DNA from: Thalia democratica
Lineage: Eukaryota
Direction of reading: 5' to 3'
Assembly (NCBI GenBank): GCA_965202585.1
Contig: OZ241828.1
Coordinates: 70,556,001 to 70,620,000 of the forward strand
DNA: 64,000 bases
In this document: in pieces, positions 3,001 through 24,309 of the stretch
Position numbering within the stretch: the stretch's first letter is position 1
Layout: each line of letters starts with the position of its first letter
Translations under genes and position numbers: made by a program
The notes under the pieces: generated by a model
What the model saw: the letters and a program-made list of their open reading frames with translations, nothing else
Told to the model about the DNA's origin: nothing
The model's database searches: none

Positions 3001-3299
3001 TGATAGTGTATTAATATTTCTACATTTAGAAAATATGAAGAATGATTTATTTTACCTAAACTATTTTTATCAAAATCTATAGTTACTCTTTACACATAAA
3101 TAAGTCTAAAATTTAGTTATTCTAAACAGAGTATTAGTCAGGGTTGCCACTCTTTGAGCCAAAAAATCTTCCCTGAGTGACCAAAAATTTCCCTGAGTAA
3201 CCTTAAATTTCCCTGAGTTTCCCTGAGTATTTTTCAAATCTTAAAAAAAAAATTTCTCTTCTAACACAAATTATTAATACCTCATTCTTTATTTTAATT

Positions 3300-4466
3300 G
3301 AGGCAACAAAGCTAAAAAAATTCAATTTCACAACTATTAATACATCATCCTTTATAGCATTGCTTATAGTTATAAAATCTTGACCTGGTGGCTGTTTGTA
3401 ACCAGGCAGTTTTTTCCAGTACTGTACCATTTTAACAACATTAGGCCAAATTAAAATGGCTCTGTCAGCTACCTGCTTTGACTTTAACCATCTTGTGGCG
3501 CAAAATGATAAAGGAAAGGTGGTTGACCCAGTTTCAGTTACATAGTTATCTCTTCTGGCCGATGTGTGATCAAATAAGCAATGGAGATGTTTTAAAACTT
3601 TTTTTATTTTCCAAGGTGTAGCTTCAACACCGGACTTGAATGCACCATGAATAATGTGCAAGTTGCAGGACTCTGTGTTAATAAGTTGAGGTAGACCTGA
3701 AGCCTCTCTATCAAAGTCAACTTTTTTTCAAGAGCAACGTTCACATTTGGTCCATCCATTGAAATTTGGATCAAATTTTTTAGGTTTAACTCTTGAATTT
3801 CGGTCAATAGGGTTTTTTTTAAATTATCTGCAGTACAGTGACCTAAAAATGCTGAAGTAAAATATTGACAGTGTACTTTTTTTTCTTCATGCATCTCACC
3901 ACCAAATCTAGTTAAGTTTTTTGCAAGACTTTATTGAAACACTCATCAAATGAAATGGAATAAAAAGACGAGCACAAAAATGTATTTTTTAAGACATCTT
4001 TAAAAAAAGGGGCTATACCAAAGTTTGTTATATATGAATATTTGGTTCTATTCATGCAGAACTTTTTTGCAATTTCACTATCAGGAAACATGGTAGTGAA
4101 TAAAGTGTTATTATTATCGCAAGAGTTTCCTGACCAGTTTTCTTTGGTACACTTGAGAGCCCAATAAATTTCAGCAGCTGTTAAAGAAGTTGCAGCTGAT
4201 ATACTAGTTGAACTATTAGCCCCACCAAAATAAGAAGTAATTGCATTATTTTTACTCTTAGAGGCTTTCAATTTAAGATGTTTTTTCGACATACTGTGCG
4301 ATTTCAATGTCCTTATACCCATGTTGGATAAGGCCATTGGTGTATCATCACCACACCACTTACATTTAAACTTCTCTTTGTCTACATCCTCAAGTAACAA
4401 ATCTTTGAAGTCTTCATGGTTAAGCCAACTTTTTTTAAACAAGGTTTTAAACTGTACTTTACTCAT
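3300..4466 (-). pseudogene. hAT-like transposase, frameshifted and C-terminally truncated
   Basis: ORF pieces 3912-4466, 3604-3894 and 3203-3661 give a BED-like zinc finger (CKWC...H....H), MFPDSEIAKKFCMNRTK, catalytic SFDE, SMDGPNVN and CxxH (SCNLHIIH). The frame then runs into the terminal repeats, so the last catalytic E and the dimerisation domain are missing. Confidence 0.85.
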
Positions 4467-5010
4467 AATACTTAAAAAAGCTTTTAAATTAAATCTGCAA
4501 AAAAGTTGTAAAGTAAATTAAAACATTCACACTAAAAAATTAATTACCATTACTGCTACTACTTTTGAATTTGTTATTTATAAACAAAAATTCAACCTCT
4601 ATTTTTTTAACAAAAGTAATACAACACTAATCTGTATTCATTTTAATTTTTCTTACTGAAAACAAGTAGTTGTAAACAAATAACAAATAACTTTATTATT
4701 TAAAAAATCAGAACTAATAGTACAACATAGTGTTTTTTAAACTACATAAGTAACTAAAAATAAAAAGTTTGTTAGAATTTTTCTATGAATAGTTAACAAC
4801 AACTTTCATTTCTCTAAACTGTTTGATTTTACTCAAGTAAATATAAATTTAAAACTTAAAAAAAACAACAATGTTAATACTAAGAATATTGAAGAACTAG
4901 CCGCAAGGCTAAAAAATTCTAAATAACCACTTAAATAATAAAAATTACTACTTTTGAACAAAATATTGAAACTGGATTAACTAAACCTCATTCTAGATCT
5001 AGAAAAAAAT

Positions 5011-5156
5011 TTCCCTGAGATTTTCAAAAACTTCCCTGAAATTTAGAGAAAAAATCAAAACTTCCCTGAGTTTCCCTGAGTTAAAAGAAAAATGCCAAAA
5101 TTCCCTGAGTTTCCCTGATATTTTCTACAGTTTGAAAATTCCCTGAGTTCCCTGAG
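5011..5156 (+). repeat. Subterminal TTCCCTGAG motif cluster (8 copies here; 4 more at 3169-3227)
   Basis: Direct count of TTCCCTGA(G/A/T) copies near each TIR; probable transposase-binding sites. Confidence 0.85.
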
Positions 5157-6904
5157 TGTGTGGCAACCCTGATTAGTACTTAAAATAAAGCAAGCTTATA
5201 AGCTTTAACACAATCAATTAATTTTAATTATACAGCTACTATAATTCAAAAAAATTTGTTATGATATAATGTTTCACTTTGTAAGTGATCTTCAGTTATA
5301 CCTAAATTCTTATTTAAATAAAGCATTATTTTTTATGTTTTCTTGAATTCTATTGTATATACTAATATGTATGAGACAAAGTAAAGTGTATATAAGTAAT
5401 TAAAGTTTCATGACATAATAGTCAGAAGCTTTAAACTTTTAATGAATTTATAGATAGTAGTTTGATAAAAAGCTTAGTATGTAATTATTTCATTACATAA
5501 AATCTTTGTCATATTGTATTGTAAATAATTTAAACATTAAATAATACTTGATATATACTCTTAGGTTCTTAATTAGTTATGTTTTATATATACAGATCAA
5601 ACTAAAAAGGTTTCAAAATGATTATGTAAAAAAGCTGTAGAAGGAAATTTAAGGATACAGTATTTTTAGCTATGGCCTTCCAGAAGACACCTATTGATTT
5701 CCCCAACTTTGACTCATATTTTTCAAAAGTTACTTTAAATCTTGGGGTGCATTAAAAGCAACTAGCAGCTTGTTTAAAAAGTAGGACTAATTTTAAATAA
5801 AACTGTTAATCCCCCAACCATGGCCTTTAACAATGAATGTGTATAAAAACAAACTCTATATGTTAAAAATGAAGTTGAAGTAAATATAATTTCGACATAG
5901 TAGTTTTTTTTTCAAATGTCTTACAGATTTCATTTTAATTATTTTGTGTCACAGCTAAAACAATTGAAAATATGGACTATGACATTTTCAAATTAAAGGT
6001 TATAACATAATAAAAACAAGTAAAGTTGGAATTCGAAAATAACATACAGGAACTGAATAATATATACTTATAATTTGAACTGAATTTTTTTAAGATTATG
6101 TATTTTATCAAATTGTTTAAATTAGATTATGTTTTATTTTAACGAGCGTCATTCCATTTACGGTACAACTTTTACAGTTTTTACTAAAGTTCTTTAGCTT
6201 TGACGCTCATTCACATCCTTATCTTTACTTCCACAATAATGTTTTGTACATCATCTTTTAGCTTAGAGTATATAGTTTGTGAACTATTATTTTATTTTTA
6301 TATTGGGTTGGTATAAATGGTGCTGTAGCCCATAGAAAAAGTGGTACATTATGGCTTTCTTTCAGTTTTTTTGGAAAATCTAACGATAAACAAATAGTTT
6401 TGACTTGATATTTTTTTTATGCATATAAAATAATATTCTGCTCATTCGCTATGTACGATTTTTTATAAAACAAATTATTTTTTAAGAAAATAGGTGATTT
6501 ATTGTTTTCATTATATTATGGTTTATCTCAATAAATATTCAACTAAAAGTAAAATGAATAAAAGATTCACACAGTACTAATTATTCTGCATTGTTAGCAT
6601 GCACAGTTTTTATTTTAACGAATTACTTTTTGATATATTAAGCATTGAAATTTTCCTTTTTTTAATAACTGTAAGCTACTTAGTCTTTGAAGTACAAAAC
6701 AAACGCAAATGATTTGTTTGAAACTAATTTTCTTAGGTGGCGCTACAGATTATTAAACTAATTTAATACATAATTTGATGCAATTTTTTTTCAACATATT
6801 AGCAAATAGTTTCTTAAATAATTTATTTTATATTATGTCAGTATGAATGGTGCTTTGGGAACGGGTCAGAAAAGAACGGGCGTAACTTTAGTACGGAATG
6901 ACAC

Positions 6905-7260
6905 ATAAACACAAAGTGAAACTTTAGCAAAGAGTGACACTTTAGCACGGAGTGACATATTAGCACGGCGTCACTTTAACTCAGGTAACATTTTAGCACG
7001 GAGTGTCATTTTAACACAAAGTGAAACTTTAGCAAAGAGTGACACTTTAGCACGGAGTGACATATTAGCACGGCGTCACTTTAACTCAGGTAACTTTTTA
7101 ACACGGAGTGTCATTTTAACACAAAGTGACACTTTAGCATAGAGTGACACTTAGGCACGGAGTGACACACTCACACAGAGTGACACTTTCTGTGACACTT
7201 TAGCGCGAAAAGACACATTAATACTAATTGACACTTAAACACAAAGGGAACTTAGCAAAG
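6905..7260 (+). repeat. 18-bp minisatellite (GTGACACTTTAGCACGGA-like) with a 105-bp higher-order duplication
   Basis: Units read directly. The block starting ACAAAGTGAAACTTTAGC recurs at 6911 and 7016 (five 18-bp units plus one 15-bp unit). Confidence 0.9.
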
Positions 7261-7920
7261 AGAGACTCTTTTTTTTTCTCTGTTTTGCTGTAAATAATCA
7301 ATAGTTGGTTCACATGGGTGGGTGTGTTCACACTGTTGAATTAATTTTTTTTTGTTCAGCGCTAGTAGACACTTTTTTTTAGCCACATGATTTTCCCACA
7401 CTTGGTGGTTTTTATCGTGGCAACTTTAATTAAGTAAGTGTCTGATATGCGTCCACCAAAAGGTTTTTTTTTAATTTTTGTTGGTTAGTTAAATTTAAAG
7501 AGGGTAAAGAAGGAACAAATGATGAAGCTTAGAATTTGTTAAACAACATCAATTGTTGAGACAGCTAGCATTATTTTCTGATGTTTTTCTTCTTTTAAAA
7601 TTTATTTAAAACTCTTTTTAAATGTATAAAATGTAATTTATTTCTAAAGCCTAACCAAGTAGTAAGATTTTTCATTCTAATGAATAAATTTTGCGAAACT
7701 AAAAACCTGGCTCTTTCAAAATAAAAGCATTTTATAACTTTTAATTTAAGCCCATGTAGGAAGTGATTAAGTATGTATGGGATCTAAACCATAATTTAAA
7801 TATGTGCTCAGTAAGTATGTGTCTGTGTAAGGTAAGCACCCACATAAGGTACGCACCTTAAGAAATTTGTGTCCGTGTAAGATACGCACCAACTTAAAGT
7901 ACCCATTTTAAGAAGTATGT

Positions 7921-8716
7921 AAGTTTCCATTGTGGTTGTAACTATTTGATTTGTTGTGAAAAGTTGTTTAGCTAATTCAAAATAACTTTTTTCAACAGTC
8001 ATACAGTTACAAAGACACAATCAACAGTATTTTATAACCAAAAGTAAGTCAGTATGATTGTAAAAAAAGCAATTCTGATTAAAAAAAAAAAAAGTTATTA
8101 TTTTTTTTTGTTGATACTAAGTACCAAAATTTAACCATTCAAAAAACAATTATTTGTGCTCTTTTTATTTGTTGTTATTCTCATTATATCACAATTTTTG
8201 TTTGTTGTAGATAAAAAAACATATACTTTTTGTTTTTGATTTGCAGATGTAGAAACTTTATGTTTTGACCATTGTTTTTTAAACTGCTTACATGTGACCT
8301 AAATATGATTAGTTGACAACATAGTTTTTTAACTAAAAGTTTGTACAGCATATTTTAGTTTAATGTATTTATGTTAAAAACAATCAATTGAAAATGTTAA
8401 AATTAAAAACAATTATCTGTTTTTGTTTTAAATTCGATTGAAAGATCCTGTAGCCTGTAGAAAAATAGTTATAGGCACAAATGGGTGCCCATATTACTCA
8501 ACAGAATTCATAGGAACATTTTCGATTTTATTTAATTTTTGAAATATTTTTTGGTGTAAGAAGTACTTTTTGTATAAAAAAAAATATAAATAATATATAT
8601 AAAATATAGTTGATTGTGTCGTTGTAACTGTATGATGTTGAAAAAAGTTTTTTTGAATTAGCTAAATAACTTTTTACAATAAATCAATTAGTTACAACCA
8701 CAGTACAATAGAAACT
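7921..8716. repeat. Nested ~105-bp inverted repeat inside the foldback element
   Basis: 7921-8025 (AGTTTCCATTGTGGTTGTAACT...GACACAATCAAC) matches the reverse complement of 8609-8716 with some mismatches. Confidence 0.75.
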
Positions 8717-10182
8717 GAAATAGTTAGGAAAATCATCAAGAACAACCATGTTAGCTCTGTTGACAACTTAAAATAAAACACTAGTTCATGGATTAACAAG
8801 GGTAAAGGTTACTTTTTTTACAAAAGATGAGACATAGGGTGGGTCCACTTTGATATTTATAAACATATATTTTTGTTGAGTTGTTGTAATGTTGTATGAA
8901 TTTTTAAAATATAGTAGTTTGAGTAAAAAGTTTTCTGTAGAAACATGTGGACTGCAATTTTTTATTTATGTTAATTATAAATCAATATCTTAATTTGCTA
9001 AGACTTTTTTTGGATAAGATTTAAAAAAGTTCAGAAAACGTTCTGCTCGAATAACTTCGCGGCTACTTCAAAGACTTTGTAGCTTGAAATTAAAAAAAAA
9101 GGAAAATTTCAATGCTTAATATTTCAAAAAGTAATTCGTTAAAATAAAAACTGTGCATGCTAACAATGCAGAATAATTAGTACTGTGTGAATCTTTTATT
9201 CATTTTACTTTTAGTTGAATATTTATTGAGATAAACCATAATATAATGAAAACAATAAATCACCAATTTTCTTAAAAAATAATTTGTTTTATAAAAAATC
9301 GTACATAGCGAATGAGCAGAATATTATTTTATATGCATAAAAAAATATCAAGTCAAAACTATTTGTTTATCGTTAGATTTTCCAAAAAAACTGAAAAAAA
9401 GCCATAATGTACCACTTTTTCTATGGGCTACAGCACCATTTATACCAACCCAATATAAAAATAAAATAATAGTTCACAAACTATATACTCTAAGCTAAAA
9501 GATGATGTACAAAACATTATTGTGGAAGTAAAGATAAGGATGTGAATGAGCGTCAAAGCTAAAGAACTTTAGTAAAAACCGTAAAAGTTGTACCGTAAAT
9601 GGAATGACGCTCGTTTTATTTTAACCACTTTTAGCTTGTAAATAATAAAAGGGAAACCACCTAAAATTATTAACTTTTACATATCAGGGATTAAAGCTTA
9701 AATTTAAAATCGAAATAAGAATTATAATATACTTTTTTAAAAACCTTACACACCTTTCAAAACATTTAAACATCTTTACTAAAAACTATTTAAAGCTTTA
9801 GCATCATTTACAATTTTAAAAAACTGCACATAAAGGCGATTGAAATTAAATTAAATGTTGCGACTTTTAAGCATATAATTTTTTTAAACTTTGCTAATTA
9901 TCCGAAGAAAAATATGTTTGTAACATTTTATAATACTTAAGTATAAATAAAATTTTTTAAGTAACTATTTTTTTAAACATTTATTTAGAATCGTTTTTTT
10001 TTTATAATTCTAGGTCTTGTTGAATTTGTTAGTATAAAAAGCTGCTTTGCTAACGAACTGAATGTCCCTTTTCTATTATTTTTTATAGTTAACTTTATAA
10101 TAAGAACATTTTTTATCTCCTAAGACTTCATTAAAAATAAAATATTTTTAAAATTGACTATTCATATTTATTAAAATGATCC

Positions 10183-10800: not shown

Positions 10801-10984
10801 CTAAGTTATGAATAAACTCTCAAAAAACTTTGAATGCTTAAAAAAGAAACATTCATTTTCAGTTTCAAATTGAGTCATTGATCTAGCTTGCTCTAGCAAA
10901 TCGAATGTTGGTTGCGCATGTCTTCTACGACGGGCTTCTTCTCTCAACCGTTGATTTACTGCTGGTATTTTCGGTGGTGTAGTA
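10801..10984 (-). CDS. Last exon: BRD4/fs(1)h C-terminal (P-TEFb-interacting)-like motif
   Basis: QRLREEARRRRHAQPTFDLLEQARSMTQFETENECFF resembles the BET CTD pattern R.REQERRRREAM..TIDMN.QSDL...FEENLF. In frame with the preceding exon (phase 2). Confidence 0.7.
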
Positions 10985-13900
10985 CTATGAAAAATATAAA
11001 CAAAGATAATTAGTTAATTGGAAATGAAAAACTTTTAAAAAGGTTTAAAAAGTTGAGTTATAATACTAACACTACTGAAGAATAATAAAGAAAGTAAGCT
11101 TGATAAATAATCAGTTACTTTTCGAATATTATCATTCTTTTTGTTTTAATTTGAATTGAAATGAGCTATCGAATAGCTTAAACGGCCAAAAATTGCTTTA
11201 TTTTGTTGTAGATAGTAAAACAATAAACCTTGCTTTTAAATACCAGATTATTTTCGCCTTATATATAAGTATCTTTTTTTCAATAAATTCACTGTTAAAG
11301 TAATAGTTTACTTAACTAAACTGATAAAATAGTAATTTTTAAAAATAAACGACATAAAAAATTCTTAAATTTATATAAAGTTAAACTACAAATTATTTTT
11401 TATTATTTTTAACTCACTTTGCAAGTTGATATGTTTGCATATTTCTATCCATCTCATTTTTATCTATTATGTTATGCAATCCGTGTGGTAAGTCATGAGG
11501 ACTTTCTCTCACATTTCTAGTTAAATCATTCTCGTTCGTGTTCCTTCTGGTGTTTGTTGGTTTTTCACAATCCTTGCCTACTATAGACACCAGATTTGTA
11601 TTCATTTGTTCCCCATTCATGCTTCCAGCGGCAACGTTTCCCTCTAAGCTCTGCTTGACGATTTTCTCCTTACTTTTGTTAAATTTCTGTCCATTGCTCA
11701 AATCTCCAAAGGTTTTCTTTTGACTTTCTAAGATCTCATCAGATATTGCGGCCGTTGATTCTAAAATATATTTAGGGTTACGTTGTTGCTGAGTTTATTT
11801 AGTTTTTTTTTTGGACATAACCTACTTGAATTAAAACACTTATTTTTTTGTATTAAGGTGTGCTAAGTAATTTATTAAAGTTTAAATTGACTATGTTAAG
11901 TTAATAGAATAACTTAAACGTACGTTTTGAAACTTTTGTATTGATTTTGTTCGCTTTTACTACTTTGATATCTTTCACATGTTTCTCGCACACCTGTTTA
12001 TATATTTTAAATATTTAAAACATACAAATGAATTTTAGTAAACTAAATGTTTTATATATTGTATATTACAAACCTGTAAATTTAATTTATAATAAAAATG
12101 CTTAATTTTAAAAAGTGCAAATAGTAACCATTCGAGATTTGTTTTTATCAAGGTGTTTTTTAATAAAAATGATGTTAAAAGAACGAAAAGGTTAAGTTAC
12201 TGTACTCTAAGTTTTGTAAATTTTTCAAAAGGTATACAAGCGATCGTTTGTTAAATTGTTTTAAATTATATTAGAATAAAAAACTTCAAGTTGACAATAA
12301 ACTTTTTATTTTTATAGTACAATACTTTAAAAGCTAAATTTTAATCTTGTAACAATGCACATAATAACTTTACTGTATTTGATACTTTATACTTTTTTAG
12401 TATTGGGTGCTATATTTATATATACACATATTAACAGTACCCTTTTTTTAATGCTTAAAATATCTACTCAAATCATTCGCATCAATTTTTATATCTTAAC
12501 CAAATTTACAACAGTAAATTTATTTACCTTTTTAGTCGCTACATCAATGCGGGGTAACTCTTTTAAAAGCGTTTCCTTTTTTGCTTCATTTTCATTAAAC
12601 CATTTTTCATCTATATCAGCAAGTTTAAATGACAAAGTGAATTTTTTATTGGTAAAAGACACTTTCGGAGGGGTAGACGTTCTGTTTTGTTATAAATGTT
12701 TAGAAATATGGAAAGAAGCATGTCGCTTAGAACATGGCTACGATAGTAGATATATTTGAATTGTGTCTTTTGAAACTAAACTTTTTATTTTTTTTTAAGT
12801 TTGTGGTAACATGAAGTTGTGTTTAATTACCATTCATTTAAATACTTATCACTATAAACTTTTGAGAATTTTGTTACGTTAATTTGAAGGACAAAAAGCG
12901 TCAAAAAGGTCGAGTTCTTAAACAGTACTAAAGAAAAATAAATAAAATTACCATAAATAATATCAGTAACTTTTCAAAAACTATCACAATTCTTTTTTTA
13001 TTTTGAGTCAAAAAGATCTAAATAGGTCTTTATTTCGATGAAAAAAACAAAAAAAAAACTCGCTTTTAACAGGCAGATTATTTTTTCAACTCAAATAGAA
13101 AATTCTACTTTTTTGCCAAATATATCAACTTTAAAGCTAGTTTACTTTATAATTAGATAAATCAGAAAAAAAAAATTTAACATGATGTTAAAGTTATACA
13201 TAGTTTTTTCACATTAATTTTATAATCTTAAACTCACTTTTGAAGTCGACTAATAGTTTGCACTTTTTTGACCGTCTCATCTTTATTTATTCCGTTATGC
13301 ATTTTGTGTTGCAAGGCATGAGGACTTACTCTCTTATTTATACTTAATTTACTCCTATTTTTAGTTAAAGCATTCTCGTTTGAATTACTTCTATTGGTTG
13401 TTTTGTCTGACTTTCTGTTTTGTTATAAATCTTAAAAATTGAACAAAAACATTTCACTTAGATTATAGCTAAATTAGTAGATACATTTGAATAATATTTA
13501 ATAAGTATTTTTATTATATTTAAGCTGGTTATTTTTATACTTGTGGTAACATTAAGTTGCGTTATCATTAAACTAAAAGCTTAATATTATACACTTTTGT
13601 GAGTTCCACAAAATTCGTTGTAAATAAATTATGTTTACACTTCTATGCACCTAGTATAATCCTTAAAATTCTCAAATTGTAAAAGTTAAACAGTAGTTTT
13701 TTTTATCCTTAAATGACTTTCAAATTATTTTAGTCAAATTTTTTTTTGTTTTGGCTATTAATTTCTTTTACCATTTTAAGCATTAATTTTTTAAAAAGTA
13801 GAATTTGACTTAGATTTGCAAATATGGCTTTTGATATTGGGAACATGTAATTATATCATTAAACATCCGTTGTTAATGAAATAGAATTTTTGTAGTTATA

Positions 13901-16900
13901 CAAAAAAAATTTTATATGTGATATTACATTCCAAAAGATTTAGTATTAAATCAGTAATAAGACAAACGATGGCTAAAACTTACATTGATTATAAATTAGT
14001 TAGTTGATTAAGTTTAAAAATAATATATTTGTTATTGTATTAACATTTTTAAACCAGCACTATTAAAAAAACAAACAATGTCAAAAAAAAAAACTAGCTT
14101 GTTAAAAACATTAAATCATTAAAAGCTCATATATGTTCATCTAATACCATTAAACACTTTTAGTTAATATAATTAAATCATATACAAAAACAAACTACAT
14201 AAAATATAATTGTTTTACATATACACATGATAAAAGTCTGTACTTACTAAATCTAAAGACGATTTTTATATTCGTTCGACATACAGACGGATATTTTAAA
14301 ACTTTAAAAAATCGTTAGATTTAGTATAAAATTAAAAATTAAAAAAAAAAAGAAAAAATACATTAACTAGTTTGTTCAAAAGCTCTACCTTTGTGTACTT
14401 TTAAATTTATCTCTTGGTCCCCTGTAGCTTTTCTTAAATTTTTCAATTTCTCTACGGTACTTGTTGTACGAACCATTTTTTGCTTGCTTTTTAGCTAAAG
14501 AACCTAAAATGGAAATTAGAATAGTATGTTAATGTTACTGAGTTTTCATCTTAAACTTTTAACTAAACTTAAAATCTAATGTTTGTCACTCTTTCTGAAT
14601 AAACTGTTATTCTTTTAAGTTATTGATCACAGAAACAAAACTTACAGTTTGCAGATTTTTTGTTGACGACGTTTTGATAATTTTTAATTTCTTTTTTTAC
14701 AGGGTTGGTTGTTTTGTTTTGAGAATGAAGAGTTTGACTACTGGAAACCTCTGAATCTAATTTGCCGCTCTGTTTTTTTATTATTTTTGTGAGATATAAT
14801 TTTGCTTCGAACTAACTAAGTCGTTATGTGGCAAAGTTTTTTAATTAATCTATAAACAATTCTGATAAAGTGATTAAAAAACATATTAGTTTTTATGTAC
14901 AACTTAATAAAGTATTTATATTATGATTTTGTTATTACCGTTTTATTGAGCCTTGAACAAAAAGATGAAATATACATTTTTAAATTTTAGATTTCACAAA
15001 CAACAACAATTTTATATTGATCAATCTAACTTTTGATAAAAAACTTACCTTAACAAAGTCCTTTTTGTTTATCTTTCTGATCTTTAATGGCGGTACTTTC
15101 TGTTGATCTTTATCACAATAGTTTTTATCACATTCGATATTTTCTTCAAAATAACTTATTGTAGTAGCGATAGACCTTTTTGGTTGTATTCTAAGTTTTC
15201 TGTAATATTTTTTCGAGACAATAAGTTTAAGAAAACAAATAAAAATATAAAAACTTACTAACAATAAAATTTTAACATATTATAGACGTAAATTTTTTTC
15301 ACTATTTTACGAAATACAAACCATAGTTACCAAAATTTTAAACTGCTTTAGTTTAAACAATGTACATTTGTTTAAATGACAATGTTACTTTTTTAAATAT
15401 TTCGTATAACAAAAACTAAAAATTTTTAAGATTTTGCAGTTTATATTTCGTTATATAGCAACATTTATTTAAAATATGTAAGACAATAAAAACTAACTTT
15501 GGCTTATTTTTCGTTTTCGGTAAAAATTCTTCATCTGACGAATCAAATTTGGCAATAGATCTTTTTTGTTTTCTCTTAAAAAATATTAAAGTTATATAGA
15601 TTTTTTTGATCATATTATATAATATAACTATTTTTATTTTTACATTTTATTGTAATTAGATGTTTCTAAGATTAAACAAAATGTTTCGAAAAAAAGTTAA
15701 AGTATAACTCTTTTAGTTATTAATTTCACAAAAAAAACTGTTCTGAAACATAAAGTAAGAAACAAGACATTATTTATCGTTCCTATTAAATATTTTATCG
15801 GCATTAATTATAAATTATAAACTATAGAATTAAGTTTATATATCGTCACCTTTGTGGAGCTGGTTTTATTTACACCTTCTTCATTTTTTTCCAGCTTACA
15901 AAGTTGTTTCGTTAAAAATCTTCGAAGTACTTGAGCCATATCGACTATTTGGTGTCCATGCTGTTTTGTAATTTTAGGTTTGTAAATTATTTACCTTAAT
16001 TTTAAATAGTAAATATTATAAATAATTGTACATAGTATGTTTCAACAGCCAAAAATCAAATAGTAAAAGTGTTAAATTTTTTAAAAAACAAGAAGCGACA
16101 CATATTAATTGTTATACTATTATATGTTTCTTTTTATTAATGAGTTATAATATTTCTTTTGAACGAAAAAAAGTACCATTTTAAAAATTATTTTGTTTTA
16201 CAAACGAGTTTTTTTTTTAAACTTACAGGATTGTACTCGTAACAGTTGAACATCAATTCAAAATCTGCTAAACATTCGTTAGCATCATTGTACATGTTGT
16301 TGTCAAGCTTTTTCTTTATATCTCCCATGCATATTGGCTCTTTGATGACTTCAAAGTAGTCCTGTAAAATATTCATTTCTTTATTAGCTATATTTTGTAT
16401 TGTGATTTCTAGTCATACCTATCTTAAACTAATTTCAGATTTTAAAATTAAAAATTTTACGTACTTTAAAAAGAACACCTACAAAAAGTACAATCCAAAA
16501 TTACAAATAAAAATACACGTTAAGGCTTTATAGATTTCAAAAGTATATTATTTATAATGTGAACACAGGTTATTTTTTGTTTACTTATGTTTTATTATCT
16601 TGATAGTTCATCATTAATTATTAATCAACTTTATAAACATTTAATTGAAGATTATTTTTGTAATCACAAGTTCTATGAAATCAACTAAGATAAATAGTAA
16701 AAGTTAAGACAACAAATTACAAAAACGTACTCTAAGTTGATTTGTAGTAATATAATAGTAGTTTCAAAATTACTTTAACAAGTCAAAATCATAAATTCAA
16801 TAAAATATAATGAAGTCTGTCATTTAAACTTTACATGCAAGGACTCTTATTATTATGTACGCAATTATTTAGCTTAGATTAATAAAATAGTTGTTTTTTA

Positions 16901-17200
16901 AAATAACTAAAATAAAACTTAAAATTAACATAAAACAAAAATCTTATCTCGGGACAATTTTTTATATTTATGTTTAATTATATTTTATTTATTTTATTGT
17001 TTTTCATATTTATGTTTATCATTTTATTATTTTTATGAGTATTCTAAAACAATAACTAAATTCTGTTTGAATATTTCACAAATACTTACCGGTGTTTTGA
17101 GCGCAACTGGATCAACAGGGTTATGAAATGGCCCGCTCATCCTGTGATGGAGCATTTTAGGCATTATTTCTTTCTTGATGTATTCAAGTTTGTAAGACAT
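10801..17200 (-). CDS. Single-bromodomain BET-like protein with BRD4-CTD-like C-terminus (11 coding exons, 583 aa)
   Basis: Manual GT-AG model: 17200-17090, 16361-16227, 15960-15850, 15574-15498, 15199-15049, 14811-14646, 14503-14389, 13414-13238, 12681-12528, 11788-11418, 10984-10801. Total 1752 nt, all intron phases compatible, no internal stop. Acceptors of exons 6, 8, 9 and 10 are A-rich and less certain. Confidence 0.8.
15850..17200 (-). CDS. Exons 1-3: BET-type bromodomain
   Basis: MSYKLEYIKKEIMPKMLHHRMSGPFHNPVDPVALKTP|DYFEVIKEPICMGDIKKKLDNNMYNDANECLADFELMFNCYEYNP|HGHQIVDMAQVLRRFLTKQL aligns with the BRD2/3/4 BD1 pattern (WPF..PVD...L.PDYY..IK.PMD.GTIKK.LE.N.Y....C..DF..MF.NCY.YN.P...IV.MA..L). 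Acetyl-lysine-binding Tyr and Asn are retained. Confidence 0.92.
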
Positions 17201-17378
17201 TTTTAATTTAATTATTGTGCCACTGTTATTTTACAATTTCTTGTCAGTATTATGTAAACTATTGAGTTATTTTAAAAAACAAATTAAACAAAACACACTC
17301 CTAGTATATTAACAATGAATTGTATGTTTCTAAGTAATGTCTGAATTTATTATTAAGCCTTCGTTAGTTGTAATCAAA

Positions 17379-19208
17379 TATTATTGTCGTGTACATTATC
17401 AAGTGTTCCTAATAAAAACTAAAATAATAATATTTAAAGTATTATGTTGTTCTCGGTGAACTCAAATTTGTGAGATATATTTCAGCTTATTATATTTTAT
17501 CTAGGAGTTGCTACCTAAGTGCATTTCTCCTTTGAGATTATATAAGTGTTAAGCTAACAAATTCTTAGGAGGCACTCCTCACATAATCTTTTTGTCAAGT
17601 TTTTTTCTAAATTAAAAATCATTATTGCCTCTGAAACTTTTATAATTTCCTTTAAAGTATTTCAACTTCTGTTAAATTTTTAAAAGTAAATGTCTTTCTC
17701 TAATTACGATATAAAATTAGATTAAATAAAGACCTATTAATTTTTTAAGAATCTAATTTAAATAGTATACTGTTAGCAGAGAACTATTGAGAATAAAGGA
17801 AAACCAAAAACACATATATAATTTTAACCACTAAATTTTTTTCGAGTAAAGAATGTTCTTTGTAATAATAATCTACGTAAGTTAAAATAAAATTACAGCT
17901 TATCAGAATTTTATAAAATAAATTTGCAACAGCGTAATTTTTTCTTATATTAGATTACTAACTATATTAATATTTATCTAAAACTAAAAAGCTAAAACAT
18001 TTTTTTTTTGTTTTAGTTCTTGATTTTTCAATACTATCAATCTTCTGTAAGGAACTTATTTCTATAAAAAATTTAATAATACTTTTTATTTTTGTTTAAA
18101 TTTAAACTGTTTTATCCAAAATTAAAAGATAGTTTAAACTATTATAGATATTTTTTGCTAACCAATGTTCTATTTTTCATTTTTATAAACAAATTATTAA
18201 TGCCTATATATGTATGAATAAACAACTAGCCTAAAACAAATATATCAGATTGCGTTGAACTTTGTTAAAGATAGTTAAAAACAAAAATAAACTTCTCATA
18301 GAATATAATATTTATAGGAAAACTGAAAATCTTAAAAAAAGTGAATTTCATAAATAGGAATTCTTGTCTGTAATAGTTTTGCGTGCTTGTTTATTTTTAT
18401 ACTTAAGTCAAACAATACCAAATACATATTAACTCAAAGTTTTTATTTTTTAACTTTTTAAACAGTTTTTATTTATTTAAACTTTTAACCTTCTTTATAA
18501 GCATTTTTTTGACCGAAAAGTGACCGACAATAAAATGACCTTAAATAAGTTCAAAAAAAAAAAAGATTAAGATATAAAATGACCATTCAAAGTTCAAAAA
18601 TTTTGCTGTTTTAAAAAAAATATTTGTAACATTCTTATTTCTTATTATGATTAAATTTAAAAGAGTTAAAAAAATTTAAACAAGCTTTATCAATTTTCTA
18701 ACGTAAACCATTTGTTTAAAACGTATAACTATAGCCAAGGGGTAAAAAAGACGTAAACATTATATTTGAGTCACCTAGAACTTTGTTAAAAATATCATGA
18801 CTAAAACGTGTTTTATAATCAGATATCTTTTCTTAACACTATTTAATTTATATATTATTGTCGTGTAAATTATCAAAGTTCCTAGAAGGAGTAAACTAAA
18901 ATATTTATAAAACATAGTTTAAGTATTATGCTGTTCTCGGTGAACTCAAATTTGTAAGATACGTTTCAGCTTATTATATTTTATCTAGGAGCTGCTACCT
19001 AAGTGCATTTCTCCTTTGAGATTATATAAATCTTAAGCTAACAAATTCTTAGGAGGCACTCCTTACATAATCTTTTTGTCAATATTTTTCTGAATTAAAA
19101 ATCATTATTGCCACTGAAACTTTTATAATTTTCTATAAAACATTTGAACTTCATTTAAGTATTGAAAAATAAATGTCTTTGTCTAATTTCAATATAAATT
19201 TAGATTTA
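17379..19208 (+). repeat. ~340-bp direct duplication upstream of the BET-like gene (17379-17722 and 18853-19208)
   Basis: Shared core GTTCTCGGTGAACTCAAATTTGT...CTACCTAAGTGCATTTCTCCTTTGAG...CTTAGGAGGCACTCCT, roughly 90% identical by eye. Confidence 0.85.
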
Positions 19209-20610
19209 ATAATTATTAAAAGTTTTAAAAATACTAAAAAGGTACTCTAAATTTGAAATAAATGTTTTAATAAAAGTTCGAAGTTCTATTTATATTTTTT
19301 CATTTATTTCGTATCTTATATAAATCTCAATTTTTTTAATGAAAAATGTTCTAAACTCTAGGTTCGTAATTTTTTTTGATGGTTTTCGACCAAAATTAAC
19401 TAACAAATATTTAAAAGAAAATGATGTTTAAGCATCAGAAGTCATAGTAACAAAAATTTAGAAAGTACTTTTTTTTAATAAAATTTATATGTACAATTTA
19501 AAAGTCAAAGGTAAAAGTATTCAAATTATACAAGAAAATTTAAAACATTTTTTGAATTTCTTATACCTAACTTTCGTTTTTTCAGACAAAAAAATTGACT
19601 TGATAAATTTTTTACAAATAAACTTTGTTATAACATATCATAACTATGTATACAAAACAAGTTAATAATATATTATCACGCTTTTCAAAGGTACTTAAAG
19701 ACTAGTATTATTAAAATATGACTAAATATTAAAATATTATATAAATACTAAAACTTAATTTGATTATGTTGTTAACAAATCTTATAGTTTATAACGTATT
19801 TATTAATAACTTAATCAAATTAAGTTTAAGTACTTATATAATCTTTTAATACTCTTTTCTGAACTTAGTTAATTAAATTATCATATTTTAAAACTTTAAC
19901 TTGAGTACTCTTTTCAAAACTATGGCAAACTTTAATTTTAATTTGATTTTTAGTAATCACATTATTTTATTTAATGAGTAGTCATTAAATTTCTTTGAAA
20001 ATCGTACTAATATATAAAAAATTTAATTTTAGTAAATGTTTCATTTTAATATCTATATTTTTAGAACTTACAGTTATATCTTTATTGGCAATTATATCAT
20101 TATGTGTTTTACATAAATTAAAATTATATTTGAAATATAAAATTAAACCGGTTTAATTAAACCAATTAAAAACCGGTTCAACTTATGATAATAAAAACTA
20201 AAAAAATTGTTCTAATAATAAACTACTTATATAAAACAATCTACTCTAAAGTACCGTATAAATATCTTTAAATCTTAGAATTTCTTTACAAATTTTTAAT
20301 ACAAAATTTATTCAAAATTTGAATTCATTCTAAATGATGAGTATATACACTGTCATTGTATTTTTTCAAACAACTTAAATTTACTTTCTTAGTAATATGA
20401 ATATAAGAAATAATTGGTTTGAAATTTTAAATATATTGTTACTTTCTATATGTGTTTTCTATTTTATCCTAAAAATAATAAATTAACTAGTTTTCTCAAC
20501 AACGCAAAAATGGTTTACTACTACCTATACCTTTACTCGACAGTATGCTTTTAACTAAATGATTATATAAAACTAATGCTTTAAAGTTATAAATTCTGAA
20601 TTTGTCAAAA

Positions 20611-21920
20611 TACTTTTTTAGGTCAAAATTCGGTCATTTTTAATCCGTTAGAATGTACTTAACTGTGTTTAAATGAAAACTACTTTTTTAGGTCAAAAAA
20701 AGGTCAGTTTTAATGCGCTTTGTTGTTCCTAATTTTGTCAAATGAAAAGTACTTAATTAGGTCAAAAAAAGGTCACTTACGATGTTTTATCATATGTTCC
20801 TAATTTTGACCAAAAGTGTACTTTTTTTGGTAAAAAAGGTCAACTTTTAAAGAGTTTTAATAGCAAAATTAGATGAAAACATTAAAAATCATATTTGTAA
20901 GTATGTTATATGGTTAAATAGAAGTTTATTGTGTAACAATTGTAAACAAAAAATAAACAGTTATAAGCATAAAAGTTAATCTTGAAATAAAAACTATTCT
21001 ATGCACTTTTTGACTTCTCACAACTAAACTATACTGTTTTAAAACAACAAAACAAACTAAATAATGAACTGAATATCTTTGAAAGTTAAGTATATAGTTT
21101 GAATGCTACTAAACAGACACATCAAGTTACAAATCTTCATTAGTTAATGATTTACTTCAAAATTAATTTTAAATATATTTTATTGTAGCTTGAACCACTT
21201 TTATTATAAAGTGATCCTGTTTAAATATTTCTAAAACATCTTTAATGCATAAAGTCGTTTACTCGTAATACGTTGTCATTTTATAAACTATTATAAAACA
21301 AAAATGTTTTCATTTTAATGCGCTTTACTTTTTTAACTAGAACAAACAAAAGCTTTTTTTTTGATCAAAAATAGGTCACTTTAACAACAACATTTTAACG
21401 AAACTTATGAACTTTTTTAAATGTATAAAATCATAATTATAGCATAAGAAACTATTATACAAAAGATATTAAAATTTATATTTTTGATTTCTCACAACAA
21501 AGTATTAGCAAAACTAAATGATAACCTTAACATTTTAGCTAATAAAATAGTTTAATGATAAATATAAAAGCTATACTAAAATCAGATCTTCATTAACTAA
21601 TGAATTTTTACAAAAATAATTAACTTTATTTTGTGTAGTTTGAGTCATTTTTATTACTCAAACTTCGATTAGAATGTTTACAAAGCTTACAACCGAAAAA
21701 TACTTTTTTAGGTTGAAAAAAGGTCATCTTTAATCCGTTTATAAGTTCTTAAATACTTACAATAAAATATACTTTTTTTGGTTAAAAAAAGGTCACTTTT
21801 AGTGTTATTTTATGTACCTAATTATGTATAATTGAATGTACATTTTTCGGTCAAAAAATGTTCGTTTTTAATGTGGTTTTATATTCCTTATTATGTATAA
21901 TGAAAAGTCTTTTTTTATAA
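20611..21920 (+). repeat. Two arrays of a ~69-bp unit (20611-20860 and 21701-21920)
   Basis: Unit TACTTTTTTAGGTCAAAAAAAGGTCA...; starts at about 20611, 20681, 20749, 20819 and 21701, 21769, 21838. Inverted related motifs (TTTTTTGACCGAAAAGTGACC) near 18505-18590. Confidence 0.75.
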
Positions 21921-22167
21921 GTAGGTTAGTTTTGTTAACTATATCATAAATAAAAGTTACAATTTTCGTAAATAGAAAATTGATATTTGACTATTTTAGT
22001 CGCATGAACAGTATAATTTTCCACATTTTAAGCTCCAAAATTATCTAATGTAAGTTTCAAATTGTTCGTAAGCTACACTTAAGTTGAAGGTTTTATTATG
22101 CCCTTTACTTTAAACGTAGGATTGTCCAGTAAATTATTAACTTGCGAGCGTATTTTCATGTTTGCAG

Positions 22168-22252
22168 GCAGCAGGGAATACCTTTGATGAGTTGCAACCT
22201 ATTCAATATGAAAGTGCTCGCAGGTCGCGCTTTGACTCTTCATGGGTCGCAG
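22168..22252 (+). CDS. Orphan exon-like segment, unknown product
   Basis: TTTGCAG acceptor and CAG|GTAACA donor bracket an 85-nt GC-richer open frame AAGNTFDELQPIQYESARRSRFDSSWVA. No partner exons identified. Confidence 0.4.
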
Positions 22253-24309
22253 GTAACATCACTCTATATTAATTTAAGATACTCAGCGATAGCGCATTTG
22301 ATCAAACCTAAAACATTGCTATACAAAATACTTTTAAGAACAAATTAAACGTAACGAAATAAAAAGTTTTCTTACTTGAAAAAAAAGATTCTTTTTTATA
22401 AAAAATATGCTTGTTTTTATCTTATACTTTTAGAATTTAAATTAATATTTATACACGGCTTTTTGATCAGTTTAAACTTTTCCTTAAACTGTAGATTTAT
22501 GTCTAGAAATGATAGTGCTTCTTTCTATAAGATGCTGATAATCAATCGTATAGTTATGTAAACTACTTTCTAAGATTTTCAAAACGTTTTTGCTTAATAT
22601 ATTATTTCCTCTAAACAGTTTTTAATACTAACTTAATTTATAGCCTTAGTACTAATTTTTAAAAGTAAAGAGAGGAAATTTTATTTTAGTTGATCTTTTT
22701 TTTTTCTGAAGAAGTATTCGTAAGTAAAGGAAAAAATTAAAAAAAAACTAATTTTTTCAAATGTTATTCAAGAACTGTTGTTGCTACTAAGTCTATTTTG
22801 TCTAAATTATTACAAGTGTCTAAGATCAGTGAGCTAAAATAAAAATTCAATCTTATTATATTTAGATAGATAACGAAAATCACTAGCTAGGTATTAAAAA
22901 TGAATCAAACTTCAGATTTTAATTAGCTAGTGAAGTTTTCAGATACAAAAAAGAGGCATTAATTTTTTAGTTTGGACATGTTTCGTTTTTAAAAACAATG
23001 TAACACAATTTTCAACTGTTTAAAAAAGTTTTTGGATTTGGTAACAAAAATATTAAGTAAAAAATTATTAACAAGTCTTAGAGATATTTATTGAATTATT
23101 TTTGATAAAAAATATCTGATAGTAAATATTTTAGTTAAAATATAAAAAACTGCATGAAAATAACCTTAAAATTATAATGTATAAATTTAACATTTCTGCT
23201 ATTTACGGAAATCGGGTATGTGCGTTATATTGAAAAATATACGTACACAAAAAGGACACAATGGTGTACATAATAATTAATAAAACTAATAATCAATAAG
23301 GAGAATAAATTATTTTTTTCTTATTCTTTTTTTTTTGATCCGTTTTCAAAAGTAGTTTTGTTTTAAACTAACAGTATTTTTTATGTTTTACATTCTCCTT
23401 TGTCGCGTTTATTCGCAAGCTCCTCCCGCTCAACATAGATGATATTCAAACTATTTATCTTGCGCTTGTAGAACTCTGTTGTGTTGATCATACAATAAAT
23501 AGAACATTTTAGAGTAACTATTTCGTGTACGGTTTATAAAACTTAATATTAGTTAATTTATTTAAGTTTATATTTTATATACTTTTTGACTGTATGAATT
23601 TTTAAAACTTTATCTTCAGTATTTCTTTTAAACAGTTAATTTAAAAAAAAAAACTCAATGTTATATTTCTATTCAGCTAGTCTTCGAAGCCGATTTATTT
23701 TTTTTTTATACAGTTATTTCATTTGTATCTACAATTTGTCGTTCTATTTAAATCTTTTAGATTTTTAGTTTTGATTTAATCTAAATTTAAATTTAACTTC
23801 AAATTAATGCTCTTTGGAAAATTTCATTTGTTAAGTTTTTAACTTTAACTAAAGATGTATGTTGTAAAATTTAGTTTTATAACAGAAGTCTTTGAGATAA
23901 AATATCCATTAAGCTAAACATGCCAACTATTCAAAACTTAACTTTAAAAAAAAACTATTATTTCTAGTAAATATTTATAGTAACCTGCCGCTTCAGTACG
24001 CCTTTTTCAACCAAAAATGCTGTGTTAAAAATGCGTTTGTTTTTACTTTTAAAAATAAAAAAACGGTAAATTAAGGTCACAAAAAATATTTTACTTAAAA
24101 ACATACTTTACGAAATCGAAAACTGAAGGAACCAGAACAAAGTATAAAACAAAATATACTAGATCAAATACTTAAAGCAAACATATTGCAGTTTTTTTTT
24201 TTCAAAGTATTCACAAACAATCCAATTGACATTTGGCTACTTTAATATTAAACATAGTAATTAGAATACTTTATAAGTCGTAGTTAAGTTTTAACAAATG
24301 AAAACAGTG

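Follow-up and report, generated by a model that had tools for sequence, protein, structure and literature searches.

By means of its bromodomains and a C-terminal P-TEFb-interacting domain, BRD4 links histone acetylation to the release of paused RNA polymerase II. Some BET offshoots carry a single bromodomain: the Drosophila testis proteins tBRD-2 and tBRD-3 and the plant GTE proteins keep the ET domain and are without a BRD4-type C-terminal motif. The family described here, from the AT-rich genome of the salp Thalia democratica, has the single bromodomain in common with these offshoots but lacks ET, keeps a BRD4-like tail and is tandemly amplified. Like the BRD4 long isoform, BRDT and Drosophila fs(1)h-L, the predicted salp protein has a C-terminal BRD4_CDT-like motif at its end, and it resembles BET proteins in its BD1-type bromodomain with Asn and Tyr anchors and in a tail whose basic helix is separated by a break from a second helix. 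Unlike BRD4, BRDT and fs(1)h-L, it is without BD2, ET and motif B, has GPF for WPF at the shelf, has a tail that scores below the Pfam cut-off, and exists in dozens of fast-evolving copies. Its length is 583 aa, as opposed to about 1,360 aa for human BRD4 (PMC13622488). Other short motifs engaging P-TEFb are the AFF4 N-terminus and HIV-1 Tat (PMC13622488); the salp tail, like them, has a short helix rich in arginine that may be able to contact the CDK9 C-lobe or cyclin T, but it has only the basic pattern in common with them and otherwise shows no sequence relationship.

Gene structure and the BD1-type bromodomain

The stretch of salp DNA that we analysed, a 64-kb window, contains a predicted minus-strand gene that runs from an ATG at 17200 to a stop codon at 10801-10803 (Table 1). 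Its 12 exons and 11 introns replace the 11 exons and 10 introns counted in the earlier note, whose phase-consistent 583-aa model otherwise holds: all 11 introns have GT-AG borders, phases are consistent throughout, and the frame is open over 583 codons, which would occur by chance with a probability of ~1e-23 (8.6% stop codons expected at the local base composition). The acceptor and reading frame of exon 3 were retained across the 30 copies compared, and use of the middle exons 8-11 in the mRNA is predicted from paralog comparison alone.

Table 1. Features of the predicted gene and its surroundings, in window positions.
Feature	Position	Strand	Remarks
Exon 1	17090-17200	-	Start codon, helix Z, start of ZA loop; GPF codons 17126-17134
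Exon 2	16227-16361	-	Bromodomain core, ZA loop to helix B end; Pfam Bromodomain 45.1 bits
Exon 3	15850-15960	-	BC loop and helix C, then linker start; conserved in 30 copies
Exon 4	15498-15574	-	KRKQK basic cluster and FDSSDEEF acidic serine patch
Exon 5	15049-15199	-	Linker
Exon 6	14646-14769	-	Linker
Exon 7	14389-14503	-	Linker
Exon 8	13238-13414	-	Linker; 3' half within internal duplicate
Exon 9	12528-12681	-	Linker; begins TSTPPKV
Exon 10	11924-11993	-	Linker; GT donor intact in window copy
Exon 11	11418-11760	-	Linker; +183 nt (61 codons) relative to subfamily B
Exon 12	10801-10984	-	C-terminal tail and stop codon; BRD4-PID/CDT-like core at 10858-10953
Candidate promoter or 5' UTR	17201-17700	-	5' flank, conserved among subfamily A copies
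Segment homologous to 19.7-kb tandem unit (C4:97.69-97.71 Mb)	1-20144		Interrupted by insertions

The N-terminal domain is BD1-like, as the earlier note proposed. Exon 2 alone is matched by Pfam Bromodomain, and its best PDB match is BD1 of human BRD4 at 43.5 bits, with BD2 at 34.3 bits. Within the same genome, exon 2 shares 65% identity with BD1 of the canonical BET gene and 42%, over 24 aa, with its BD2; exon 1 shares 45% with that gene's first coding exon and ends at the identical intron position (after L-x-x-P). Given that both bromodomain introns lie at the same positions as those of canonical BD1 (C6:72.45 Mb) and that the exon structure of BD2 differs, we infer descent from BD1 by gene duplication. 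The acetyl-lysine anchor residues of the window copy are Tyr39, Tyr80 and Asn81 (codon 16230-16232), which align with Y97, Y139 and N140 of BRD4. The shelf is G23-P24-F25 in place of WPF, just as had been noticed from the sequence. In the window copy alone, helix B has lost one codon between codons 75 and 76 (about 16247/16248), which leaves a one-residue gap relative to BRD4; the missing residue is present in 29 of 29 paralogs examined, and its loss may destabilise the bromodomain of this copy.

The linker had been described as about 400 aa rich in K, S and N, which agrees with its composition over residues 120-522 (K 17%, N 10%, S 9%, net charge +43); this basic stretch of ~400 residues is probably disordered. 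Part of it arose by internal duplication: the 3' half of exon 8 and the next intron (13347-12893) are an old duplicate of 11524-11037, a stretch that spans the 3' half of exon 11 and the intron after it, and the acceptor flank of exon 9 (12870-12676) is a duplicate of that of exon 8 (13605-13409). Exon 9 has probably diverged from a duplicate of the terminal exon, because its first residues resemble the TTPPKI of the tail exon. The frame would also survive direct splicing of exon 8 to exon 12. In five array copies the GT donor of exon 10 is destroyed by a 1-nt deletion, and a GT three bases further on preserves the frame. A search for homologues of the exon 11 frame returned only one 95-aa ORF, 84% identical, on a 938-bp marine metagenome contig that looks like genomic DNA rather than a transcript.

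The absence of BD2 and ET, also part of the earlier description, extends across the window. Canonical BD2 and ET peptides gave no tblastn match over the 64 kb, in which the bromodomain exon has a single match, and Pfam BET (ET, PF17035) had no match on the 10 exons scanned (1-3, 5-9, 11 and 12). The nine Pfam BET (ET) matches in the genome are all on C6 and C7, with none on the chromosome of the window. On the window search and the confinement of ET matches to C6 and C7, we rejected a hidden BD2 or ET exon.

The C-terminal tail and the BRD4 P-TEFb-interacting domain

The suggestion of a BRD4-CTD-like end stands in part: BRD4_CDT (PF17105) is the only Pfam family matched by exon 12, but the score of 15.6 bits (E 0.011, profile positions 10-42 of 44) is below the Pfam gathering threshold of 27 bits. 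Paralog tails score 15.8-17.7 bits, all likewise sub-threshold, with BRD4_CDT as the sole Pfam match in 5 of the 7 tails tested. The tail of the genome's own canonical BET protein is itself sub-threshold at 23.3 bits, and the family tail profile aligns to it with an hhalign E of 2e-5, collinear to the C-terminus. The core of exon 12 comprises a basic helix, RLREEARRRR, a break, QPT, and a second helix, FDLLEQARSMTQFETEN, and this motif lies at the extreme C-terminus, ending 17 residues ahead of the stop. Two helices are predicted, at tail residues 8-23 and 29-59, which matches the two helices of the BRD4 PID on P-TEFb (PMC13622488). An alignment of nine copies has 26 invariant columns, and the tail is the most conserved part between the two subfamilies introduced below (dN 0.12 vs 0.20-0.22).

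The BRD4 residues contacting CDK9/cyclin T are R1325, R1329, E1332, R1335, L1353 and L1354, with Arg1329, Glu1332 and Arg1335 as CDK9 contacts (PMC13622488). By a hand alignment in which the human sequence was checked only against the residue numbers of that paper, the window copy has A, R, E, R, S and M at these positions, four of six being kept or conservative, and subfamily B has L and M at the last two. Searches with the tail profile found no BRD4 in the PDB, where the only match was a chance one to a ribosomal protein, and no BET protein among 1.84 billion representatives, where the matches were to a 1,440-aa protein, over six short stretches, and to two terminal-exon ORFs of 52 aa. Both ORFs, on AT-rich marine metagenome contigs and adjoining E/K-rich coiled-coil sequence, had no BRD4_CDT match and therefore provide no bridge from the tail to BRD4. 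A protein atlas search with the tail gave no usable match. We regard engagement of P-TEFb by this tail as putative and advance it tentatively, judging from sequence.

A tandemly amplified family, probably evolving by birth and death

The earlier note treated the locus as a single special gene; it is instead a member of a tandemly amplified family, in which some copies are broken. The bromodomain exon has about 89 genomic matches, and at least 33 loci combine a bromodomain with a full-length tail match on the same strand, ~5.4 kb apart. The recurrence of this bromodomain-tail unit in 33 loci, along with the canonical-BD1 intron positions, supports the lineage-specific architecture that had been suggested. 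Family copies are mostly found in roughly 20-kb tandem units, and paralog homology extends through introns and flanks. Two subfamilies can be distinguished, A with 7 copies including the window copy and B with about 26. Subfamily B has the same 12-exon structure as the window copy, with bromodomain, tail and internal duplication, and its exons are 82% identical; at this divergence of about 18%, subfamily B copies keep 12 of 12 exons open and AG/GT at the exon borders. However, subfamily B has Y-E-Y-I-S where the window copy has Y-E-Y-N-P, and has therefore lost the acetyl-lysine anchor Asn that is kept in all seven subfamily A copies. Its shelf reads KPL, RPF or QPL, its exon 11 is 61 codons shorter, and its C-terminus is shorter as well.

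Homology of the window to the tandem unit is interrupted by window-specific insertions at 3138-5212 and 6143-9613, and a 1.75-kb piece of the array units is missing around the window copy. Array units occur in both orientations, and a dispersed repeat (17750-18860 in the window) accompanies both subfamilies and is found elsewhere too. The region around the gene is rich in transposons. A retrocopy origin was rejected, as introns are retained. Exon 1|2 junction patterns of subfamilies A and B had no match in JGI metagenome contigs, and none in the genome itself when up to 3 mismatches were allowed, so that no processed retrocopy was found. When the locus was sought among sequencing runs, no RNA run contained it, and the three runs in which it occurred were DNA-like, with introns and exons covered alike and no joints at the predicted splice sites, a result that says nothing either way on expression.

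The dN/dS check suggested with the earlier note indicated fast change of the exons, at about 0.7-1: the ratio is 0.68 within subfamily A (P 0.008 against neutrality), and near neutral overall (about 0.9-1). Between the window copy and a subfamily B copy there are three exon indels, all in-frame, whereas introns have 24 indel events per kb, of which 88% would shift a reading frame. Relative to the sister copy, the window copy has one in-frame exon indel where 12 were expected (P 7e-5); in the introns, 27 of 29 indels are not multiples of 3. Because introns carry more A/T runs, their indel rate sets the neutral expectation for exons too high. On the whole tree, 5 new stops compare with about 60 expected neutrally (P 1e-19), and from the root to the window copy there are none compared with 14.5 expected (P 5e-7). 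This strong depletion of both frameshifts and stops shows that selection acts on the reading frame. On the window copy's own terminal branch, constraint is only suggestive, with 0 stops vs 2.9 expected (P 0.057) and with 8 synonymous and 27 non-synonymous changes (omega about 0.8). Comparison of complete family loci covered 12 only; among copies examined, two of seven in subfamily A and two of five in subfamily B are broken. The closest relative of the window copy (C4:68.79 Mb) has two premature stops and one lost acceptor, and the window copy is the only one in subfamily A with all splice sites canonical. Its 5' flank is 94-97% conserved among subfamily A copies, vs 90-94% for introns.

Origin of the family, alternative readings and significance

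We consider the locus to be an offshoot of BET within a family evolving by birth and death, with a probability of about 0.8, and the window copy to be an intact and probably protein-coding member of this lineage-specific, BET-derived family. The family would have originated by partial duplication of the canonical BET gene, retaining the first three coding exons (BD1) and the C-terminal P-TEFb-interaction-like motif and losing BD2 and ET. Later segmental duplication in roughly 20-kb tandem units would have amplified it into two subfamilies, followed by turnover through birth and death, with rapid amino-acid change and a reading frame kept by selection. Because the Asn/Tyr anchor is kept in subfamily A, its bromodomain could dock on acetylated chromatin despite the altered GPF shelf, and the two-helix tail would engage CDK9/cyclin T in the manner of the BRD4 PID. 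Such a protein might act as a minimal adaptor between acetyl-lysine and P-TEFb, or might compete with the full-length BET protein for P-TEFb. As the earlier note suggested, it may be restricted to the germline, and the Trp-to-Gly change at the shelf would be expected to abolish JQ1 binding. For this whole explanation, which blends gene identity and evolution with P-TEFb engagement, our confidence is lower and only leans in its favour.

The tail could instead be a conserved basic, amphipathic pair of helices that binds something else, such as nucleic acid or a different nuclear protein, so that its likeness to BRD4_CDT would be compositional. All tails miss the Pfam cut-off, BRD4_CDT does not match the similar tails seen at C2:63.21 Mb and on marine metagenome contigs, PDB and atlas searches were empty, and by the hand alignment against PMC13622488 the Arg1325 equivalent is Ala and Leu1353/Leu1354 are replaced by Ser-Met in subfamily A. 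However, BRD4_CDT was repeatedly the sole Pfam match, over positions 8-42 of 44, the motif is at the extreme C-terminus of a protein with a demonstrably BET-derived N-terminus, and the canonical BET tail is sub-threshold as well while aligning to the family profile; we find another partner somewhat unlikely. Similarly, we think it unlikely that the window copy is a young pseudogene, not yet visibly broken and drifting in a family that may be functional. This reading draws on the broken state of its closest relative, the omega of its terminal branch where the absence of stops is only marginally surprising, its unique helix B codon deletion, two transposon insertions in its unit, and the missing 1.75-kb array piece, but it has to accommodate a fully open ORF with every splice site canonical, a sole exon indel relative to the sister copy that is in frame amid intron indels that mostly are not, and a 5' flank conserved above introns.

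A family carried as cargo of, or amplified by, a mobile element, with the frame kept for the element's benefit, would agree with array units in both orientations, with the dispersed repeat that accompanies both subfamilies and occurs elsewhere, and with the transposon-rich region. Yet the parts of the 19.7-kb unit that were read contain no transposase, reverse transcriptase or terminal repeats, the unit has no ORF of at least 90 aa matching such enzymes, the copies are clustered in few arrays rather than dispersed, and retained introns argue against retroposition, which together make a mobile element improbable. Least probable is a longer, conventional BET gene that includes these exons and in which those for BD2 and ET were overlooked. 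A possible acceptor just upstream of the ATG is compatible with a 5' extension, but the searches for BD2 and ET were empty in the window and matched ET on C6 and C7 only, the tail runs straight into a stop, the canonical first coding exon has a matching ATG and short N-terminus, and the same compact 5.4-kb spacing of bromodomain and tail recurs at 33 loci.

If the BET-offshoot reading holds, a natural protein reduced to the two ends of BRD4 would reveal the minimal parts kept by evolution, and this mini-BET would supply a ready-made tool, or a competitor, for studies of elongation control; if the family is not expressed, it would be no more than a gene fragment multiplied in a large segmental duplication. 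More speculatively, and at rather long odds, a salp 'mini-BRD4' in dozens of copies could be the pattern expected from genetic conflict over transcription elongation, with an intact pocket and a variable shelf in subfamily A (G, K, R, Q or W at the Trp position) and a dead pocket with the tail kept in subfamily B, whose pocket-dead copies would act as P-TEFb decoys. Germline drive, or antagonism of viruses or transposons exploiting BET/P-TEFb, would be conceivable examples of such a conflict. The scale and speed of amplification, with ~33 bromodomain-plus-tail copies and ~89 BD1-type exons, are unusual among core chromatin readers and, together with a dN/dS near 1 and a preserved reading frame, indicate lineage-specific or conflict-driven biology in pelagic tunicates.

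Structure of the mini-BET gene

The mini-BET gene is a single-bromodomain gene that derives from BET BD1 and ends in a conserved C-terminal two-helix motif. Its model, rebuilt from open frames and then script-checked for borders and phases, comprises 12 exons and 11 introns with AG acceptors, GT donors and agreeing phases throughout. The earlier note had the 583-aa product and the phase consistency right, but counted 11 exons and 10 introns. The window is strongly AT-rich (G+C ~25%), and 583 open codons would arise by chance with a probability of ~1e-23 (8.6% stop codons expected from base composition). Conservation of the 500 bp 5' of the ATG exceeded that of the introns.

Coordinates of mini-BET exons (window positions) and of related copies in the genome
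Feature	Location	Strand	Borders and phase, or identity
Exon 1	17200-17090	minus	AG/GT, phase check
Exon 2	16361-16227	minus	AG/GT, phase check
Exon 3	15960-15850	minus	AG/GT, phase check
Exon 4	15574-15498	minus	AG/GT, phase check
Exon 5	15199-15049	minus	AG/GT, phase check
Exon 6	14769-14646	minus	AG/GT, phase check
Exon 7	14503-14389	minus	AG/GT, phase check
Exon 8	13414-13238	minus	AG/GT, phase check
Exon 9	12681-12528	minus	AG/GT, phase check
Exon 10	11993-11924	minus	AG/GT, phase check
Exon 11	11760-11418	minus	AG/GT, phase check
Exon 12	10984-10801	minus	AG/GT, phase check
Subfamily A, 7 copies	window copy; C4:68.79 Mb; five in tandem array C4:97.47-97.73 Mb		bromodomain exon 89-96% identical
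Subfamily B, ~26 copies	C2:11.3-12.1 Mb; C4:15.8-16.9 Mb; C5:77-79 Mb; two small contigs		77-81% identical
Further BD1-type exons, ~50	mainly C5:10.5-11.7 Mb		42-66% identical

The BD1-like N-terminal domain, the GPF in place of WPF and the K/S/N-rich linker described from the sequence were all recovered. Exon 2 alone scored 45.1 bits against Pfam Bromodomain and, compared with human BRD4, matched BD1 best (43.5 bits; BD2, 34.3 bits). The shelf reads G23-P24-F25, and Tyr39, Tyr80 and Asn81 are the counterparts of BRD4 Y97, Y139 and N140. A one-residue gap in helix B, 6 residues ahead of the Asn, was found in the window copy alone among 30 copies compared. Across the family, the shelf Trp position varies (G, K, R, Q, W), while the anchoring Asn is kept in all subfamily A copies and lost in subfamily B (Y-E-Y-I-S). 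The linker (residues 120-522; K 17%, N 10%, S 9%; net charge +43) includes clusters of basic residues and the acidic patch FDSSDEEF.

Usage of the middle exons is predicted. Exon 8 and its intron are related to exon 11 and its intron through an old internal duplication, and exon 8 could therefore join exon 12 directly and in frame. The start of exon 9 resembles that of the tail exon, and exons 8 and 9 have acceptor flanks (window 13605-13409 and 12870-12676) that duplicate each other at 68% identity, both ending ATAACAAAACAG. The three sequencing runs that contain the locus were DNA-like, with no splice joints, and no RNA run contained it; protein and splice-junction searches for mini-BET transcripts returned genomic metagenome fragments only, and the genome yielded no processed copy.

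Descent from a BET gene

The earlier note's proposal that BD2 and ET are missing was borne out: tblastn with peptides of the canonical BD2 and ET gave no match in the 64-kb window, Pfam BET (ET) had none in the 10 mini-BET exons scanned (all save 4 and 10), and the nine ET matches in the genome all lie on contigs C6 and C7. Because it lacks both domains, mini-BET falls by definition outside the BET family, from which it derives as a new architectural variant; no published account of such a single-bromodomain and tail family was found in the literature searched.

The canonical BET gene of this genome (C6:72.43-72.455 Mb) has BD1 introns after '...LP' and after 'YNx', and a BD2 with an exon structure unlike that of BD1. 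Given that the mini-BET introns occupy identical BD1 positions, that BD2 is split differently, and that exons 1 and 2 share 45% and 65% identity with their canonical BD1 counterparts, sequence comparison indicates that mini-BET is a DNA-level partial duplicate of a BET gene that retained BD1. A retrocopy origin was ruled out by the introns at canonical positions.

An unusual ET-repeat arrangement at C7:11.638-11.641 Mb (loci L004/L005/L007) has three tandem ET domains in an unbroken open frame of ~296 aa (Pfam BET 47.7-61.1 bits), and C6:72.417-72.448 Mb (L006, L008-L011) has three tandem ET-domain exon pairs on one strand; the canonical locus thus seems to bear two additional ET units downstream.

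Duplication, decay and selection among the copies

The bromodomain exon had 89 matches in the 802-Mb genome and the tail exon 33 full-length matches, paired on the same strand ~5.4 kb apart; the window gene is one among at least 33 such copies. The tail-exon search found no tail for the ~50 further BD1-type exons. Locus L047 (C5:11.0145-11.0225 Mb) represents a ~36-copy array of a remoter BD1-type gene, with exon 2 53% identical, SSLF for WPF, the Asn retained and no recognisable tail within 6 kb. Homology among mini-BET copies extends through introns and flanks, and window positions 1 to ~20144 correspond to the 19.7-kb array unit, save insertions private to either. Past this point, window 20152-23200 belongs to another local repeat, found also at C4:67.35-67.41 and 70.46-70.74 Mb (77-91% identical).

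A 3.5-kb element (window 6133-9620) with ~553-bp terminal inverted repeats (6143-6695, 9065-9615) recurs on all large contigs in numerous copies (96-98% identical) and appears to be a DNA transposon that was recently active; its insertion is private to the window copy of the duplication unit. Window 3138-5212, an insertion absent from the array unit, has three adjacent minus-strand ORFs (3203-4466), which we would guess to be hAT-type transposase pieces. A ~1.1-kb repeat in the upstream flank (17750-18860), possibly an array-associated transposon, recurs, often as inverted pairs, at a distance of ~10 kb from copies of subfamily B and on C1, C7 and C10 at unrelated sites. The window copy lacks a 1.75-kb piece (junction near 9996/9997) that carries an open frame of 105 aa (array locus L059:662-976; C4:97696262-97696576, minus), which matches the TAZ zinc finger below threshold (18 bits, E 0.004) and lies ~1.3 kb past the stop of mini-BET, on the other strand. 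Each array unit has one such frame (5/5), and elsewhere there is only a weak relative at C10:31.83 Mb.

Twelve complete loci were aligned for frame and splice-site comparison. Premature stops occur in 2/7 subfamily A copies, one of which also lost an acceptor, a third has an open frame and a non-AG exon 4 acceptor, and 2/5 subfamily B copies are frameshifted. Among A copies, only the window copy combines an open frame with canonical sequence at every splice site. Subfamily B shows 12 open exons with AG/GT borders at ~18% exon divergence. Between the window and a B copy, all three exon indels (3, 6 and 183 nt) are in frame, versus 98 intron events in 4.1 kb, 88% with lengths other than multiples of three; one in-frame exon indel separates window and sister copies against ~12 expected (P 7e-5), an expectation somewhat inflated by the commoner A/T runs of introns. 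Under the intron substitution spectrum, 6.4% of random coding substitutions would create stops; 5 new stops were observed in the whole tree against ~60 expected (P 1e-19), and none on the path from root to window copy against 14.5 (P 5e-7). All five array copies have lost the exon 10 donor to a 1-nt deletion, and a GT located 3 nt beyond it maintains the frame. The reading frame has thus been held by selection while the sequence changed fast: dN/dS was 0.68 within subfamily A (P 0.008 against neutrality), ~0.9-1 overall, and 1.4 for the A versus B bromodomain, by rough comparison not significantly >1. The tail changed slowest (dN 0.12 vs 0.20-0.22). On the window copy's own terminal branch (8 synonymous, 27 non-synonymous changes), signs of constraint are thin, with 0 stops against 2.9 expected (P 0.057). 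The family is under birth-and-death evolution with selection for coding capacity.

The tail exon and P-TEFb

The BRD4-CTD-like end described in the earlier note stood in part: BRD4_CDT was the sole Pfam match of the last exon, covering positions 10-42 of the 44-position profile, but its score of 15.6 bits (E 0.011) fell below the 27-bit cut-off, as did that of the canonical BET last exon (locus L001; 23.3 bits). A nine-tail family profile aligned with the canonical tail at hhalign E 2e-5 (35% identity over 37 columns), collinearly up to the C-terminus.

A similar tail (EARRKR.AQPR.DL.EQ..IMN.FE) ends AT-rich marine metagenome contigs and a C2:63.21 Mb locus (L055:972-1253, L056:899-1336, L057:833-1141), the latter with no bromodomain exon within 9 kb. 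One contig is from Tara Oceans project PRJEB4352; in the contigs, an E/K-rich coiled-coil stretch precedes the tail.

In a hand alignment with a human BRD4 sequence that was compared with PMC13622488 by residue number only, the mini-BET tail has A, R, E and R at positions 1325, 1329, 1332 and 1335, and S and M at 1353/1354, where subfamily B has L and M. AlphaFold on the tail alignment placed helices at residues 8-23 and 29-59 with QPTFD between (mean pLDDT 72). In BRD4, R1325, R1329, E1332 and R1335 contact CDK9 and L1353/L1354 contact cyclin T, and the PID on P-TEFb forms two helices (PMC13622488), which the predicted mini-BET helices fit. We infer, with a probability of roughly 0.55-0.6, that the tail represents a P-TEFb-interacting domain that has diverged. 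More tentatively, and at odds clearly below even, the mini-BET protein may link, or compete for, acetylated chromatin and P-TEFb.
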